The translations under genes were made by a program, and so were the position numbers. The notes under the pieces are model-generated. The model saw nothing but the letters and a program-made list of their open reading frames with translations. It was not told the origin of the DNA and made no database searches. DNA of 64,000 nt from Salpingoeca rosetta (lineage: Eukaryota; Protista; Choanoflagellata): NCBI GenBank assembly GCA_033442325.1, contig JAWQFM010000002.1, forward strand, positions 2,039,044-2,103,043. Reading direction: 5' to 3'. Positions 613 to 62,161 of the stretch are shown here, one piece after another. Every line of letters starts with the position of its first letter. Position 1 is the stretch's first letter.

Positions 613-2699
613 TATCTGTGTGTGTGTGTGCGTGCGTGTGTGTGTGTGTGTGCGTGCGTGCGTGTGTGTGTGTCTGTGTGTGTGTGCGTGCGTGCGTGTG
701 TGTGTGTCTGTGTGTCCGTCTGTGTGTGTCCGTCTCTCTGCCTCTCTGTCCGTCCCTCTGTGTCTCTACCCCTGAGTATATGTGTGTGTATGTGTGCTTT
801 CTCCGTTCGTTCGTTCCCTGCGTTAACGCACACGCACCATTCCGGCACTGTCACTTGTCCCATCTGCTGTGCCACAGGGCAAAGGATCAGTCGTATGTCT
901 GGGATCGCACTGAGCGCATGAAGGAGCTGCTGGGCGCAAAATCGCTGACGTCGCACACACGCGAGGCGCAGCTTGAGGCGAGCACATCCGAGGAAATCAC
1001 GTCCGCTTTCTCAAACATCATTGCGCCCGGGAGAAACAAGGCCGGCCTGCTTCCAGGAACAGCCGGTGCCACTGTCCTCGGAACAGCACAGCCCTCATCT
1101 TCATCGTCATCGTCGTCATCGTCATCCAAGAGCGTGATGTCGCATGGGCAGCGGGTGACGGTGTCGCACTCGAGCAGTGCTGGCGATGCAGGGGAAGATG
1201 CGGAGGTGTACATCCCATACAGGCGCGGGGATGATGAGGATGAGCAAGGGTACGCCATCAACAACGGGGCGTCGTTTACGCGCGAGGCCGAGAGCGCCAC
1301 GTTTGCTCTTGACGGCGACGATATCCAAGACATGCACAAGTCCTCACAGCGGAAGAAATGGTGTGTGTGTGTGTATTGTTTGTGTGTATGGTTTGTTTGT
1401 TTGTTTGTTTGTTTGTTTGTTTGTTTGTTTGTTTGTATTGTTTGTTTGTTTGTTTGTTTGTGTGTATGGTTTGTTTGTTTGTTTGTGTGTGCGTGTGTAT
1501 TGTTTGTGTGTATGGTTTGTTGTTTGTTTGTTTGTTTGTTTGTTTGTTTGTTTGTTTGTTTGTTTGTTTGTGTCTGTGTGTACTTATTTATGTCTCTGTG
1601 TCCGTGTTTGTCCGTGCGTCTCTCTTTGTCTGCGCACGCCTCTCTGTCTGTGTGTATGCATGACCATTTTGTTTGCCGGCCAATGTTGTCTTCCTACCTC
1701 GACCTTGCCCGGGCGATGTGAACTCACTCATCTTCGTGCCCGTCGTGGCCCTGCTGTTGCCCCCCCCCCCCTTTTTTTTCGTGTACAGGGACCGCAAGAA
1801 GAAGAAGTTTGTTGGAGAGAGCAACAACACGAAAATGATCCGCACAGAGAGCGGGAACAAGGTGCCGGCAACATTCAAGTCGAACCGCTACAAGGAGTGG
1901 TCTGCCAAGAACCACGTCTCAATGTACGTGCCGCCAGCGCACCAACGGCCAGGCTGTGGGTTTGCTGTCGTCACTTCTGTTCTGGTGTTAGCGCACTGTT
2001 TTCGTCTCTGCGCTTGAGTAACCTTTACCCTGCTGATTATCTCACGGCGTTGCGCGTGTCACCGCGTTTTGTCACACACTTTGTCTGCCTCTTGCTCGTC
2101 GTTGATGCCTGCAGGCAACACGTTGGTGAAGAAGAGGATTCGCAAACTGTGAGCAAGTTTGAGATCAGGCGGAAAAGGTGAGAGCTCGCCGGCCGTTTTC
2201 ATTTTGTGTGCATGTTGAGCTGCCCAGATGCATGTGCTGTGTGTTGCATCACGGCTGCGATCATGCACGTTTGTCATGCCTTCTCGACACCCACGTACGA
2301 CGCTTTCATCTCACACTGCATCTATGTGCGTGTGCGTGTGCGTGCAGGCGTGGATGGCACACGAAGACTGCTGACGATGAGCTGAAGGCGAAGGTGCGTG
2401 CATGCTGGTGGTGACAAATCTGCTGGGTACAGCTGATTGTGTGATGCGTTCTTTGGGTTGCTGCATGTTTGCAGTTCGATCCACGCTCACCACATTTGTG
2501 ACACGCTCACCACAACAACTCTGCTCATTGCACCACCCATCACATCACGCGGCAGGCTGCGAAGCGCGGCGGCGAGCTGAAGCACAAGTCGCAGATTATC
2601 AAGGAGCGCAAGCGCAAGCAGAAGCTGCAGGACCAGATGAAGCGGCGGGCACAGGTCAACGCAGTCCGCAAGGGCAAGAAGGCAAAGGGGAAGAAGTAA
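151..2699 (+). CDS. DDX54: DEAD-box RNA helicase DDX54/Dbp10, C-terminal part (5' end outside window; multi-exon)
   Basis: Spliced exons give [20 protein letters not shown]...[21 protein letters not shown]...GYAIN...[17 protein letters not shown]...KKW|DRKKKKFV...[21 protein letters not shown] (DBP10CT-like domain) and a basic tail [15 protein letters not shown]. Stop TAA at 2697-2699. Confidence 0.88.
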
Positions 2700-3342
2700 C
2701 AACCACACAACTCCTTGCATCTGTGTGTCTGTCTGTCTGTAAGTTTGGTTGTCTGTCTGTCTGTAAGTTTGGTTGTCTGTCTGTCTGTAAGTTTGGTTGA
2801 CTGGCTGTCTCTGATGCCTGGCTTCAGTCAGTGTGTCTCTCTGTCTGTGCCCTAATCTCTGTGTACGCGCCCTTGCCGAAACCTTGTTTGTCTGGGCGCA
2901 TGCTGTATTCCGTTTCGACCCACTGCCACATGCCCCTGTTTCAACGCCTTCTCCCCCCCTCCTGGATGATTGTGCATCCATCATACATGTGTACACGGTA
3001 CGACCTTGGTCCACTCTTCTGCGCTGTCAAGCTCATTCTTCGGTGTTGGTTGCGTTTATGGGAGTATGCGGGTGTTGCTGAAGTGGTTTGGACGGCCGCA
3101 ATGGCTCAGAAGAACATGTGGTGGGCGCAAGCAGTGCAGGGGTGTTGGCTGGCTGACACGCAGAGCAGGATGATAGCACATAACAAAACAAAACAAGGGC
3201 ATGGTGGAAACAGGGACCAGGGCAAGGGAGAAGGAAGCGGGCAGGCGCAACGAATCAAGTGGACTGCTGTGCGCAGTTACAATATGTTACTTCTGCATTC
3301 CTTGTTTTGTGGCGTTTCCCCCTCCCCGTGCTTCATGTCACG

Positions 3343-3581
3343 TTACTCGAGGCGCTTGATAATGTGGGAGCCGGAGTCTGTGTGCACGACGTCGCTCATT
3401 TCGCCAGGCTTGAGCTTGATGAACGCCTCGAAGAAGGGCGCCTGGATCTCCTCCTGGGTGAACTCTCCAATGTTGCCTGCAATTGTCACAATGGCATGAT
3501 GACAATCATGTTTGCATGTACAAGTTGTTGTCATGAGTTGGGGCGTAAGGGGCAGCACTAAGCTGAAGCAACGGAAGCATA

Positions 3582-3619
<38 letters not shown>

Positions 3620-4456
3620 TGTGTCTGTGTCTGTGTGTGTGTGTGTGTATCTGTGTCTGTGTGTGTGCACGTTGGGTGTAGGCACGCGCACACACACACG
3701 CGCGCGCACGCACAAAACATGCAACATGTTTGTTTGTTCGCAGTGCTAGGTTGGTCATGGCTGTACCTACCTCCTTGAGCGGCAGAGCCGCAGTCGGACT
3801 CGACGCGCGCAATGTCCTCGAATGACTTCTCGCCCGCCTCAATCCTGTCGGACAGAAAGATTGGGGGGGAAGGCAACGAATGATGAGCTGGGGATGGGTG
3901 TAGCATCGTTGCCTTTCGCAGCAAACACAACATACACAGTAAAACACACGCACAAATAAGCATGCAAGCACACATGCACAAATAAGCATGCAAGCACACA
4001 CAAGCACACACGTGCACAAATAAGCATGCAAGCACACATGCACACACATGCACACATGCACACACACAACATGATTACGTACTGGCGCTTGAACTCGCGA
4101 AGCATGTCGTCGGCCTGCTCCTTGGTGCGCGATCGGATCGTCTTGCCCTCTTCGTCCTTCCAAGACGAGCAACGGCGAGACTCCTCGTGCTTCACGAGGA
4201 TGTGCATGGCTACATGGGCAATCACAGCACCACGAACACAACACACGTACCAGTTGTTGCCAGCCACAGTCAGCCACAGCCATCGCAACGACAACTGGAC
4301 ATGGAACACGCTGTCACTCCCACCACACAAGTGCACGCACATGCGCACACACATGCACAAATGCACACACATGCACACATAACACCAGCAACAACAACGC
4401 CAGCAGCAGCAACGCCAGCAGCAAAAACAACGACAGCACTCACCGCGGTAAGGCAT
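3343..4456 (-). CDS. PIN1: Pin1-type parvulin peptidyl-prolyl isomerase, single domain (exons ~4456-4444, 4209-4083, 3844-3772, 3476-3343)
   Basis: Splices to MPYRAMHILVKHEESRRCSSWKDEEG...RTKEQA...SFEDIARVESDCGSAAQGGGNIGEF...LKPGEMSDVVHTDSGSHIIKRLE*. It has the Pin1 phosphate-binding K/RR loop and the SDCxSA motif. GT-AG sites have matching phases. Confidence 0.85.
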
Positions 4457-57440: not shown

Positions 57441-58344
57441 ACAACAACAACAACAACCACCACCACCAACAACAACAACAACAACTCGTCACGCTCGTCA
57501 TGCCACTGAATTCAGTGTCTGGAGCATCATGCAAGAGCCTACGGTATATGGTTCGCACCTAATGCGTGTTTTGTGGACAAATAAATGAAGATTTTCACAA
57601 ATCCCCATGACAAGTGGACGCGGTGGATAGTCCTCGCATAATCTTCTCAGCACTGCGCGCAACCACAAACCTGGCTTTCATCATTGTGTGCTGAGACGTG
57701 TGTGGTGAGTGAGGAGCTTGTGTGGGTGTTTGCCTGCTGAATCACGACGCATCATCTCGTGGCTGCCTTCCCTGCCTTGCTCTGTGCAGCCTTGTGCCGA
57801 CCTCCAACCAGCGCTGGCCACACCATCACCACCACGGCTTGCCTTGCCTTGCCTCACCTCACTCTCATCTTCTTGCCACGTACCACACCCCCTTTGCAGG
57901 CGCGTGACCTTCTCCTTTTTGTGTGTGTGCGCGCGTGTGTTGTTTTGTGACCTCCCCTCCAATACTACAGCAACGAACAGGTGGGGTTGCACTGCTTGAT
58001 CGTCCACGATCACGGCACGCTTGAGCTGTACTGTGTTGTGGTTGTGGGTTGTTTCGGTGGTCTCGGATGAGTGTGCACTGCGGTGATTGGGTGGTGTTGT
58101 TCTTTGAATGTTGCCTCCCCCCCCCCTTCCACACACACACACACACGCACACACGCACGCACTCGCTTGTACTGCCACGCCAAGACAGTGCTGTGTGCTG
58201 TGCTGCATGATACCCACGTCAGCACACGTCTGCACGCCACTGCATCCATCACTGCACTCGCTCACCCATGTCCACCTGACTCGTTGCCTCCCCCGCCTCT
58301 CCTCTCTCCCTCTCTCTCTCTTTGTGTCACGCCTGCAGGAGAAG

Positions 58345-61300
58345 ATGATGATGACCGGGCCTCGGATGTGGGGCGCGGCAGCCCTGTTGCTGGTTGCAGC
58401 GTTTGCAACCATGACCATTGACTCAGCGGCTGCGCAGCAAGACAGCTTCTCATGCGCTCCGCGCAACTACAGCGACCCGTGCTTGTCCGTCCCCACCCTC
58501 ACCAACGGCGACTTTCAGCGCTTCCACGCCGGCATCCTCACCGCCGTGTTCCTCATCCTGGGCGCCCTCTTCACCTACCGCCTCATCTACAACTTCCGCG
58601 TCGTGCCCTGGCGCCAGTCGTCCGTCTTCTTCACCTGTGTCCTCGCCTGCATCTTCCACGTGGTGTGGCTCAGCAAGGACGCCAAGAACATCCAGCACCC
58701 GCTTCTCGGCCTCCCCTACGAGGGCCTCGCCGACCTCACCTTCACCATTGTCATCTGCTGCCTCTTTGGCTACATGATGAAGCTCGACGACGAGATTCGC
58801 CAGAACCGCGTGCACTGGCGCATCGTCGTGCAGTGGATCTTCCTCGTGACCGCCGCCATCCTCCAGGTCATCAAGATCTACACTGCCCGCCAGGACCAGC
58901 CTCGCAGCAACGTCTGGATTAGCTTCATCTCCTCCCTCCTCCTCTCCCTCACCACCGCAGACCGCTGCCTCCTCCTCATGAAGCTCCTGCCCCCAACCCA
59001 GCGCAGCACCCACACCTGGTTCCGTAAGGTCAACTTTCTCACCTTCTTCATCTCCGTCTGCCTCTTCATGAACTCGGCCATCATCTTTGCCCACGCCATC
59101 GACGAGGAGGTGTGTGTTGTGCGCCATGTGTGTGTGTGTGTGTGCTTGTGTGGAGTGGGTGTCTTTCAGTATCGTTTGTCTGTCTTGTGTGCTTCCAGGG
59201 CGGGCGTGCATGTGCACAAGCACGCGCGCACGCACACATGAGTCGCCTCGTGTCCATTCAACCCTTCCTGCTTGTCTCTCTCTCTCTCTCTCTCTCTCTG
59301 TGCTTTCCCACCTTCTCTCGTACCCTGACACTCGCCCACACGCAACCACAACCACAACCACAACCACACTTGCCAACGCTCCTCTCCCTCCCCGTCTCAC
59401 ACCCCCCCCCCCACACACACACACACTTTTTTTTTCGTGCCAATCCAACAAACACACAACAGATCAAGGTGGCGTCACGGGACCGCAGCCACACGTACGC
59501 GTGCTTCTACGTGTTTGAGTTCCTCTCCGTGCGCACGGTTGCGCTTGTGGTTGCCCCACTGATGGTGATCCTGACTGGTCTCTGGGACGATCCCCGCACC
59601 ATCCTCGCCGTCAAGCGCCTGGAGAGCCGCAAGTCCCAATCCATCACCTCCCGCGTCGACGCCTTTATCAACCGCTACTGGCGCACCATGGCCTTTATCC
59701 TCGTCATCTCCCTCATCACGCTTGGCCTCGCCGGCTGGGGTGGCTCTGCCACGTGCTACGCCCCCCACGCCCAGGTTGTCCGCATCAGCCTGTTTATGGC
59801 CCGTGTCGGCGCCACGCCCTTCTACATCCTCTTCCCGGCCGTCTTTGTCATGGTGCTCAACGGCTTCAACACCAGCCTGGAGAGCAGCATGCTCGGCAGC
59901 TTCCTGCCCCGCGCAAACGGCTCCCTTGTCATCTACCACAAGTACGTCGGCTGGCTCTGCGTCATTACAATGCTCTTCCACATTGGCGGCCACATTGGCA
60001 CCCTCTTTGCCTACCACCGCTTCATCTCCGACCTCGCCACAAACCCGACCAAGCAGGCCATTGTCGACCAGATCAGCAAAGACCGTCCTGCCGTCCTCGA
60101 ATACTTCTCCGACATTTATCACTTCCGCGGCGGCCCGTGGATGCTGCCCTGGTTCACGGGCGTCTTCATGACCGCCTGCATGATCGCCGTCGTCGCCGTC
60201 TATTACGTCCTCGCCAAGCGCAAGCACAAGCGCTTCAAGAAGTGGCACGTGTGGGCCGCCTACTCCATGCTCGCCGTTGGCTCCATCCACGGCGCCGGCC
60301 GTGTCCTCGGTGACCCGTACCTCTGGGTTGTCTTCCTCGTCGTCGCCGGCATCTCCATTCTCGACTTTTTGTGGTGCCGCCGCCGCAGCGAGAAGGTGCG
60401 CTGCGAGATGTGGGAGCTCACCACCCCTGGCGCCCGCGGCCGCGTCGAGGTTGTCCTCATCCTGCGCTTCCGCTGCAAGAAGATCAAGTTCTTCCCGGGC
60501 GACTATCTCCTGCTGCGCGTGCCCCAGATCTCCGTCAGCGACCAGCATCCCTTCACCATTGTCACCAACGTGCCCGAGGACGAATACGAGCTGCACATCA
60601 AGGTGTCCGACCTCAAGGTCAACGCCTGGACCCGCGCCCTCACCGCCATGCTCGACTTCAAGTACGGCCGCATCATGGCCGGCCACTCGTACCAGGCCAA
60701 CCGCTCTGCCTCGGAGGAAGCTGAGCAGCAGGAGTCGTCCCTGGAGCAGCGCCTCCTCAGCAACCAGGAGGGCGGCATGTCTGGCCTCCTCGACGACGTC
60801 AAGTGCAACGTCGACGCCGTCGTCATTGGCGGCTTCAAGTCCAGCCTTGCCGATAGCGACTTTATCAACGGCGACTTTGTGCTCATGGTTGGCTTCTCCG
60901 TGGGTGCCACCCCCATGTGCGCCTACCTCAACCGCCTGCCCGAGTCGCGCTTTGAGGAGCTGCGCGACAACATCTGGTTCTTCCACCGCAGCGAGTTTTA
61001 CAACAAGCCCGATGGCCAGACCGTCTTTGGCGCCTACGGCGGTTACATCCGCGAGGTTTGCCAGGAGACCGAGAAGAGGGTAAGCTTCCCATATTTTGTT
61101 CTTGGTTTGTGCCTGCGATGGGTACAATTGCCTCCTTGCGCTGCATGCTTTTGCTTGCCTTGCTTCTTTCCTGCTCTTTCTTGTTTTATACATGAGCCTC
61201 ACCAATATGATTGTTTCCTCTCCCTCCCTCCCTCCCTCCTCTCTCTCTCGAACTCTCAACAAACAACACACAACAATTACCATCGCCAGATTGGCCGCGA

Positions 61301-61538
61301 CCCCAACGGCCCGGCAGGTCCCATCCTGCAGGCGGAGGCTGGCGAGCGCCGCGACGTGTTCTGGAACCGCCTGCACAGCCGCGTTGCAGAGTGTCTGCAG
61401 AAGCTTCCCCAGGGCGGCCGCGTGCACATTGGCTACTGCGGCTCCCTGCGCGGTCTCGACTCGCTGTACGACGCCCTGGATAAGGGCCAGCTTGCAGCCA
61501 ACCGCGCCGTTAAGTTCTACATTGAGAGCTTCGGTTAA
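58345..61538 (+). CDS. Fusion of a GPCR-like 7TM domain and an NADPH oxidase (NOX/ferric reductase) module (exons 58345-59109, 59463-61079, 61290-61538)
   Basis: Signal peptide and seven hydrophobic segments, then six NOX-type TMs with heme His pairs (YHKYVG...FHIGGH; KWHVW...SIHG), FAD motifs FPGDY/HPFT/LHIK/WT, NADPH motifs VGATP and YCG, and terminal ESF. Both introns are phase-0 GT-AG. Confidence 0.85.
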
Positions 61539-62161
61539 GAGACTTTTTTCCTCTCACTACCCCCTTCCCTTTCTCTTTTCTTTACACATTGTCGTCGGTT
61601 TTAATGCCCGCCTCCTCCCCCCCCCCCCTACCCAACCCACCATTGGCGTTGTCGTCGTTGTCCTGCTGTTTCACAGTCTATCTCTCCTTCCATACCTCTA
61701 CCTACACATGCTACTGCTTGTTTTTTTCCTTTTACTGCTGTCCCGTCACAAATTGTACCCAACAACCAAACATAGAAGCCATGTTTGCTTGCTTGCTTGC
61801 GTTTTGCTGACGCCTGACTGAACTTTTTGGTCTTGTCCTTTTCCCGTGCGTGTTGTGTGCCCTTCCTTTTCGTCGTTCTTCTTCATCGTGTTCGTTCACC
61901 GCCCAAAGTACCTGTGACCTTGCGCTCTTGCTGTGTGTGTGTGTGTGTGTGTGTGTGTGTCGCTCGCTCGCTCGTCCGCTCTTTGTGAGTGCGAGCTTGG
62001 TGATGTGCATGGTTTGTCGTTGGCGTTGCCGTCGTGCTTGTCTTCAACAAAGTAAATGGCCTTTCTTGATCGGAACGAATTATCATGTGCCCTTTATCTT
62101 GTATTGGCGCAGCTGGCAACCAAGGACGTGGAGCTTGCCGCACACTCACACACACACTCAC

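Follow-up and report, generated by a model that had tools for sequence, protein, structure and literature searches.

A predicted seven-transmembrane domain joined to a divergent NOX/FRE-type core in a protein of the choanoflagellate Salpingoeca rosetta

In a 64,000-nucleotide window of the Salpingoeca rosetta genome (assembly GCA_033442325.1, contig JAWQFM010000002.1, positions 2,039,044 to 2,103,043 of the forward strand) we analysed the gene PTSG_01423, in which a predicted seven-transmembrane (7TM) domain is joined to what appears from its sequence to be a complete but very divergent core of the NOX/FRE superfamily. We put at about one in two the probability that PTSG_01423 is a real, expressed, single-chain flavocytochrome with 13 transmembrane (TM) segments, the 7TM domain of which acts in cis, most likely by gating or tuning electron transfer in response to a cue.

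Gene structure, transcripts and distribution of the fusion

PTSG_01423 lies on the + strand and has three exons, with a coding length of 2631 nt and a product of 876 aa. Its spliced translation is letter for letter the NCBI entry 'hypothetical protein PTSG_01423' (Salpingoeca rosetta), which carries the UniRef label 'FAD-binding 8 domain-containing protein'. The features are as follows, in coordinates of the window.

58345..59109, + strand: exon 1, residues 1-255, with a signal-peptide-like N-terminus, a short two-Cys ectodomain and TM1-TM6; ATG at 58345, GT donor; RNA depth 10-210
59110..59462, + strand: intron 1, 353 nt, GT..AG, between TM6 and TM7
59463..61079, + strand: exon 2, residues 256-794, with the third extracellular loop (ECL3), TM7, the linker, the six-TM heme domain, the FAD domain and most of the NADPH domain; AG acceptor, GT donor
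61080..61289, + strand: intron 2, 210 nt, GT..AG
61290..61538, + strand: exon 3, residues 795-876 and the stop codon, C-terminal part of the NADPH-binding domain, with the end ...YCGS...FYIESFG
58504..59585, + strand: predicted 7TM domain, residues 54-296, interrupted by intron 1, delimited by an AlphaFold2 (AF2) model
59586..59687, + strand: predicted cytoplasmic basic linker, residues 297-330, LWDDPRT.LAVKRLESRK...DAF..RYWR, nearly invariant
59688..60377, + strand: predicted six-TM ferric-reductase-type heme domain, residues 331-560, from the alignment to NOX2
59937-59939, 59979-59981, 60246-60248 and 60288-60290, + strand: codons of the putative heme His residues H414, H428, H517 and H531
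59991-59993, + strand: codon of H432, an extra His in TM3; the same domain also has R369 and T487-G488
60378..61535, + strand: predicted cytosolic dehydrogenase domain, residues 561-876, interrupted by intron 2
60546-60557 and 60891-60914, + strand: dehydrogenase motifs HPFT and GFSVGATP; the domain also has CGS and a C-terminal Phe

A preliminary description of this stretch, made from its letters alone, had proposed one spliced open reading frame (ORF) fusing a 7TM domain to a NOX module, with TM7 and the NOX part on one exon. Both statements were borne out. The gene model, the identity with the database entry and a transcript contig agree on the single reading frame, and because intron 1 falls between TM6 and TM7, exon 2 is common to TM7, the linker, the entire heme domain and most of the dehydrogenase.

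All three exons were covered in the sense orientation by stranded raw RNA reads from two runs (X21 and X22). The RNA depth in intron 1 was zero (59179-59440). In intron 2 it was 4.9 in X21 and 0.16 in X22, and the spliced joint 61079/61290 was crossed by 91 and 55 reads, respectively (89 and 53 of them sense). In addition, a 2579-nt contig (record 6 of the 2011 run X7) corresponds to 58355-59107, 59461-61078 and 61289-61462, which are contiguous in its own coordinates, and a loose end at 59461 carries ATCGACGAGG, with which exon 1 ends. The RNA nature of this run was guessed by the tool only and the contig, taken alone, proves the joined form, not the strand or the ends; being intron-less over both junctions, it links the 7TM part to the NOX part in one transcript. 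The cDNA check suggested in the preliminary description thus has its answer in one contig that spans both junctions, which speaks against two separate transcripts. The joint of intron 1 was missing from the list of short-read joints because repeats there were skipped in read mapping.

Two neighbouring genes or transcripts might have been wrongly joined in the gene model, but such an artefact can essentially be excluded. The depth of exon 1 in X21, which was about 5-fold below that of the 3' part, could be quoted in its favour, although it fits a 3' bias equally well. Besides the contig and the absence of RNA from intron 1, the artefact is contradicted by exon 2, which TM7 and the oxidase have in common, by four independent Trinity transcriptomes with complete ORFs of 843-881 aa and the same architecture, and by a metagenome scaffold with an identical intron position.

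The transcriptome ORFs belong to Microstomoeca roanoka (871 aa), Hartaetosiga gracilis (881 aa), H. balthica (843 aa) and Salpingoeca infusionum (860 aa), and their identity to the S. rosetta protein is 41-67% in the N-terminal domain and 62-80% in the C-terminal module. The metagenome scaffold, from Tara Oceans (TARA_SAMEA2622875_METAG-scaffold_13350, 1410-4245), carries the same 7TM-oxidase gene from an uncultured marine relative: its 277-aa ORF shares 70% identity with exon 1, the intron behind it interrupts the reading frame at the identical codon (…IDEE / IKVA…), and the oxidase exon comes next. Against S. rosetta, the 7TM is 70% identical and the NOX part 81%. The architecture, which the preliminary description had proposed to look for in other protists, was thus found in five species of choanoflagellates and in a single lineage from a marine metagenome.

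Among 5.8 billion proteins, a word-indexed search gave no further member of the fusion family. An exhaustive profile search with the 7TM domain among 1.84 billion representatives returned only the family itself and a 51-aa fragment, with no 7TM sequence homolog outside the family; the profile of the NOX module found nothing new at E ≤ 10 except two marginal matches, and no paralog of the N-terminal domain was present in the S. rosetta genome. As far as these searches reach, the fusion family is restricted to craspedid choanoflagellates. The Tara Oceans scaffold also places the family in open-ocean samples. Its gene had been split by a prokaryote-style gene caller into products of 277 and 605 aa, and fusions of this kind can therefore be hidden in metagenome protein catalogues.

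The extreme N-terminus is less uniform than the preliminary description, which had listed a signal peptide and a glycosylated two-Cys ectodomain, would suggest. It is signal-peptide-like in S. rosetta, M. roanoka and H. gracilis, and probably in the Tara homolog, but not in the ORFs of H. balthica and S. infusionum. C37 and C46 of the ectodomain are invariant, and so are C269 in ECL3 and C353 in loop A of the heme domain, whereas the NYS sequon is not conserved (NYG in M. roanoka, GYS in the Tara homolog).

We also noticed several other properties of the locus. Many (CA)n, (CT)n and poly-C tracts occur both in the 5' flank (57900-58340) and in intron 1 (59110-59460). The depth in X21 was ~10-48 over exon 1 and early exon 2 vs ~75-190 from ~59965 on, and X22 was much more even; the step in X21 could reflect a 3' bias or an internal start yielding a core-only isoform. 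Intron 2 is in frame without a stop codon, and the mechanical ORF 59112-61538 reads through it; if it were retained, the NADPH-binding domain would gain an internal stretch of 70 aa, and the RNA shows mostly the spliced product. Past the stop codon (61537-61900) the sense RNA depth was still climbing, from 340 to 680, which suggests either a long 3' untranslated region (UTR) or a downstream same-strand transcript that overlaps the gene or lies next to it. At 61617, in a C-run of the 3' UTR, one base was missing relative to the assembly in about one fifth of the RNA reads (60 of 327 and 58 of 288) and in a contig of run X7; the cause is either a different length of the homopolymer or an error of assembly or sequencing.

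The oxidase/reductase core and its acceptor

The C-terminal module was recognised by its FAD_binding_8 domain, which scored above the cut-off in all five members (S. rosetta, 27 bits; cut-off, 22). Ferric_reduct also matched all five, with a best E-value of 2.4e-6, the S. rosetta protein itself reaching 22.6 bits and thus falling under the 28-bit cut-off. In the dehydrogenase, HPFT (617-620), GFSVGATP (732-739), CGS and the C-terminal Phe do not vary within the family and are co-linear with their NOX counterparts, GFSVGATP aligns with GGGIGVTP of NOX, and a family-specific insert of ~35 aa occupies residues ~660-700. The best sequence match among solved structures was NOX2 (E = 4e-7 with the single sequence, 6e-8 with the profile, at only 32-35 bits), followed by csNOX5 and NOX5. 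The Atlas's own model of the core matched NOX/FRE/RBOH clusters with TM-scores of 0.71-0.75 over ~480 residues. Pfam scans of the family proteins detected no EF-hand, in agreement with the preliminary description.

The four putative heme ligands, H414/H428 and H517/H531, are invariant in the family. The same holds for the additional TM3 His and the Thr-Gly of TM4 that had been pointed out earlier: H432, T487 and G488 are present in every member and align with H119 and T178-G179 of NOX2. R369 is invariant too, and in a MAFFT alignment with the S. rosetta NOX2-like and EF-hand NOX proteins it falls on the conserved TM2 Arg of NOX, a residue that belongs to the oxygen-reducing centre in the NOX5 and NOX2 structures. 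According to Zhang et al. (2013), the equivalents of H414, H432, T487 and G488 separate oxygen-reducing NOX from metalloreductases, and metalloreductases are without the His-119 and Thr-178 equivalents (PMC3591440). Judged by these residues, oxygen would be the somewhat favoured acceptor of the core.

Several features weigh against reading the core as a NOX. The spacing of the heme His is x13 in TM3 and again x13 in TM5 (H517...H531), not the x12 of NOX. The B-loop is invariant in the family but not polybasic as in NOX, and the NAD_binding_6 hidden Markov model (HMM) matched none of the five members at E ≤ 10. The clusters nearest to the core by language-model features mix FRE-type and NOX-type families. 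Finally, when the NOX module was modelled by itself, AF2 gave a poor result, with a predicted local distance difference test score (pLDDT) of 51 and a predicted TM-score (pTM) of 0.42; in a coarse Foldseek check of this model the ten best matches were all DUOX1, NOX2, NOX5 or SpNOX, over ~600 alignment columns.

As for the spacing, two of our controls, the NOX2-like gene of S. rosetta (contig 15) and the EF-hand NOX P0010, had x13/x12, and a third, the bacterial-type FRD P0009, had x13/x13. In the literature, x13/x12 is the spacing of Nox and FRO, and x13/x13 that of Fre (PMC4206789, citing Sumimoto 2008). Since FRO enzymes reduce iron with the NOX spacing, we regard the spacing as a marker of lineage and not as a determinant of the substrate. 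Measured against yeast-type FRE, the protein matches in the x13/x13 spacing, whereas it has the His-119/Thr-178 equivalents that FRE are without. The earlier wording 'NOX rather than FRE' is therefore too firm; it holds for the H432/T487-G488 signature but not for the TM5 spacing, which is Fre-type, nor for the domain profiles, with Ferric_reduct below its cut-off in S. rosetta and NAD_binding_6 undetected. On its sequence features we place the module within the NOX/FRE superfamily, as a divergent member whose functional signature is of the NOX type, and assign it to no NOX subfamily.

The same features bear on the idea that the enzyme is a transmembrane metalloreductase for Fe3+ or Cu2+, with the 7TM domain as an accessory or permease-like partner for the reduced metal. 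We consider this improbable. It would agree with the Fre-type spacing (PMC4206789), with several nearest feature clusters that are named ferric reductases, and with the invariant external residues H61, C269, C353 and H357, which could bind metal. However, the residues that separate oxygen-reducing NOX from metalloreductases are all invariant, NOX2 is the best match among solved structures, and the spacing does not fix the substrate, as FRO ferric reductases share the x13/x12 of NOX. The 7TM domain, moreover, has no significant Pfam match, transporter families included, and its conserved polar residues do not line the entire depth of the membrane.

Four other FAD_binding_8 loci were found in the S. 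rosetta genome, none of them close to PTSG_01423. Two FAD_binding_8 loci, L001 (1402141-1405425) and L002 (1417734-1421018), lie ~15 kb apart on G000 contig 15 and have identical FAD_binding_8 scores of 77.6 bits, which points to a tandem duplication of the canonical S. rosetta NOX2-like gene; L002 has the canonical x13/x12 heme-His spacing. A further locus, on G000 contig 11 (529039-532200), encodes a divergent NOX/FRE-type dehydrogenase with HPFTVSS, GGIGVTP, CGP and the end ...HHEVFTF. It scores only 28 bits with FAD_binding_8 and is unrelated in detail to PTSG_01423.

The seven-helix domain and its possible coupling to the core

An AF2 model of the N-terminal domain, built on the five-species alignment, reached a pTM of 0.71 and contained seven helices (residues 54-86, 92-117, 119-152, 158-182, 186-214, 224-259 and 272-296), so that a 7TM bundle is predicted, as had been supposed. 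All top matches among 48,161 PDB representatives (VIA) were 7TM chains, namely designed folds resembling G-protein-coupled receptors (GPCRs), class A GPCRs, microbial rhodopsins and heliorhodopsins, with Z-scores of 13-16 over 200-245 residues; such values barely exceed the background that the tool states for helical bundles, and they do not separate GPCRs from rhodopsins. Foldseek against the PDB gave weak generic 7TM matches only (E ≥ 0.03), and a shape search of the ESM Atlas was uninformative (TM-score ≤ 0.52). At E ≤ 10 no Pfam family matched the domain, transporter families included, and with no Pfam 7TM family among the matches the sequence could not be placed in a recognised GPCR family. 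The term 'GPCR-like', used in the preliminary description, would on the model be justified for fold and topology only, as GPCRs and rhodopsins match alike and no GPCR family does so by sequence.

By language-model features the nearest named clusters were THH1_TOM1-3 (0.90), GPR137 (0.86), PRRT3 and TPRA1, in an overall range of 0.86-0.91, and they were the same for the S. rosetta domain and for the most divergent one, from S. infusionum; the tool itself rates such scores as leads. PF06454 (THH1_TOM1-3_dom) matched neither in the protein scans nor in the S. rosetta genome. The resemblance to THH1/TOM1/GPR137 that had been seen by eye was thus not recovered by HMMs, and kinship of the domain to GPR137/TOM1 may be taken as a language-model lead only. 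Two other identities were rejected. The domain is not a retinal protein or microbial rhodopsin, because TM7 (VFEFLSVRTVALVVAPLMVILTGLW) is without the Schiff-base Lys, and it is not a degenerate copy of the heme domain, as an hhalign comparison of the 7TM with the NOX module revealed no relation between them.

C-terminal to the seven helices, the NOX part has six hydrophobic segments. Lysine and arginine make up 22% of the residues in loops assigned as cytoplasmic vs 9.5% in loops assigned as external, so the positive-inside rule holds; this asymmetry fits an N-terminus outside, seven TM segments, a linker inside, six TM segments and a cytosolic dehydrogenase. The topology given earlier thus agrees with both the charge distribution and the helix predictions.

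Conservation within the 7TM domain is strongly uneven. In the cytoplasmic half, 57 of 127 positions (45%) are invariant, vs 17 of 121 (14%) in the half that faces outward (Fisher p = 9e-8). The motifs conserved on the cytoplasmic side are VPWRQS in the first intracellular loop (ICL1), LDDEIRQ.RVHWR at the end of TM3 and in ICL2, and TADR.LLLMKL...QRS..WFRKVNF from the end of TM5 through ICL3 to the start of TM6. The linker, LWDDPRT.LAVKRLESRK, is nearly invariant, with the invariant columns W296-K312 and 8 K/R in 37 residues. This concentration of invariance on the cytoplasmic half and the linker points to a coupling in cis to the oxidase. The conserved cytoplasmic face would also suit binding to an unknown cytosolic partner in place of the protein's own dehydrogenase, a further point against our reading. 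A complex prediction of the 7TM (residues 40-301) with the NOX module (302-876) gave a score of 0.00, controls not having been run, and it gives no answer, neither for nor against.

In the mechanism that we propose, cytosolic NADPH would give up electrons to FAD, from where they would reach the inner heme (H414/H517), the outer heme (H428/H531) and finally an acceptor at the external or luminal face. This acceptor would most likely be O2, yielding superoxide, because the NOX-marking residues H432, T487-G488 and R369 are invariant. The 7TM domain would influence the oxidase in cis, by way of the linker and of its own strongly conserved cytoplasmic half. Its predicted place is immediately N-terminal to TM1 of the heme domain, where NOX5, DUOX and RBOH carry their EF-hand regulators, and it would most likely gate or tune the transfer of electrons from dehydrogenase to heme on a membrane or extracellular cue, replacing EF-hands or p22phox and cytosolic subunits. 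We suggest a regulatory or sensor role for the domain because of this EF-hand-equivalent position and of the constraint on the cytoplasmic face and linker.

In its strongest form, the protein would be a true receptor-oxidase, in which a stimulus sensed by the 7TM (a ligand, a lipid, pH, redox state or a membrane property) switches on electron transfer within one chain, without G proteins, and delivers reactive oxygen species either at the surface of the cell or inside the food vacuole. This reading is possible, but we put it forward tentatively.

It is rather unlikely, to our mind, that the 7TM domain senses nothing and is a built-in structural or maturation partner, an analogue of p22phox or DUOXA that stabilises the heme domain or directs trafficking, for example to the lysosome or food-vacuole membrane. 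The fusion is obligatory, in that no stand-alone copy of either half was found in the searches, and Pfam scans revealed no sequence hallmark of any ligand-binding GPCR family; the ectodomain is tiny, the outer half of the bundle is poorly conserved, and the language-model lead goes toward GPR137 and TOM1, which are lysosomal/tonoplast 7TM families. All of this would suit such a partner. A packing partner, however, should be conserved through the full depth of the membrane, whereas here the conservation is concentrated in the cytoplasmic half and the linker, and the GPR137/TOM1 lead is without profile backing, the Pfam scans being blank and PF06454 having no match in the S. rosetta genome.

Relation to known systems and significance

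Like NOX2 and the EF-hand NOXs (NOX5, DUOX and RBOH), PTSG_01423 is predicted to have a six-TM bis-heme domain followed by FAD (HPFT) and NADPH (GxxxGxTP) sites and a C-terminal aromatic residue, and it shares with them the x13 spacing in TM3 and the equivalents of His-119, Thr-178/Gly-179 and the TM2 Arg. A long outer loop between TM3 and TM4 is found in NOX2 as well, and a regulatory module N-terminal to TM1 of the heme domain is found in NOX5, DUOX and RBOH. In PTSG_01423, however, this N-terminal module is a predicted 7TM bundle and not EF-hands or a peroxidase domain. The core also departs from NOXs in the TM5 spacing (x13, not x12), the B-loop without a polybasic stretch, the ~35-aa insert between the FAD and NADPH subdomains, the replacement of CGP by CGS and of GPFG by GGFK, and the blank NAD_binding_6 result. 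With yeast FRE the protein shares the domain set and the x13/x13 spacing (PMC4206789), but it differs in its His-119/Thr-178 equivalents, which metalloreductases are without (PMC3591440), and in its N-terminal 7TM.

The likeness to p22phox and DUOXA is that these are membrane partners needed by NOX-type heme domains, a part that the 7TM could play in cis; they are separate polypeptides with non-7TM folds and no sequence similarity was seen, so the analogy would be functional only. The orphan proteins THH1/TOM1 (PF06454), GPR137, PRRT3 and TPRA1 resemble the N-terminal domain in size and 7TM topology and form its nearest language-model clusters (0.86-0.90), but they stand alone without an enzyme module, and HMM similarity between them and the 7TM of PTSG_01423 was not detected.

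Known fusions of 7TM domains with enzymes carry soluble enzymes (kinases, PIP kinases, phosphodiesterases), and one of them, rhodopsin-phosphodiesterase (Rh-PDE), occurs in S. rosetta itself. In these proteins, among them GPCR-PIPK and the choanoflagellate GPCR-TKL/K, the enzyme is covalently attached to the C-terminus of the 7TM, as it is here; the difference is that the enzyme of PTSG_01423 is a predicted six-TM membrane flavocytochrome and not a soluble kinase or phosphodiesterase, and that its 7TM belongs to no catalogued GPCR family and has a TM7 without the retinal Lys. The 2025 eLife catalogue of choanoflagellate GPCRs describes 18 families and several GPCR-kinase fusions (PMC12716839), and its text contains no oxidase, reductase or FAD fusion.

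In the literature searched we found no paper naming PTSG_01423 and no description of a 7TM-oxidase architecture, in line with the earlier statement that no family with a fused 7TM was known. The papers on NOX and FRD evolution that were searched describe no N-terminal 7TM, and the sequence file of Zhang et al. contains another S. rosetta NOX (F2UDN9), while PTSG_01423 was not found in it. It is probable that the fusion represents a new domain architecture, with a probable new mode of regulation, within the NOX/FRE superfamily, in a few craspedid choanoflagellates.

NOX enzymes are known to be regulated by EF-hands (NOX5, DUOX, RBOH), by p22phox together with cytosolic phox subunits, or by DUOXA, and a covalent seven-helix domain would add a further mode. 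The architecture could link sensing directly to the production of reactive oxygen. Should the protein turn out to be a true receptor-oxidase, it would stand for a new way in which a NOX is regulated and a new class of output for 7TM receptors, in the closest relatives of animals. The mixed NOX/Fre signature may be useful for finding the residues that decide between oxygen and metal reduction, and because the family is small and clade-restricted, it offers a compact system for studying how a regulatory module was grafted onto a NOX core. S. rosetta is a CRISPR-tractable bacterivore whose life history responds to bacterial cues, and a sensor-coupled oxidase could bear on prey killing, signalling and cell-cell interaction in the sister group of animals.

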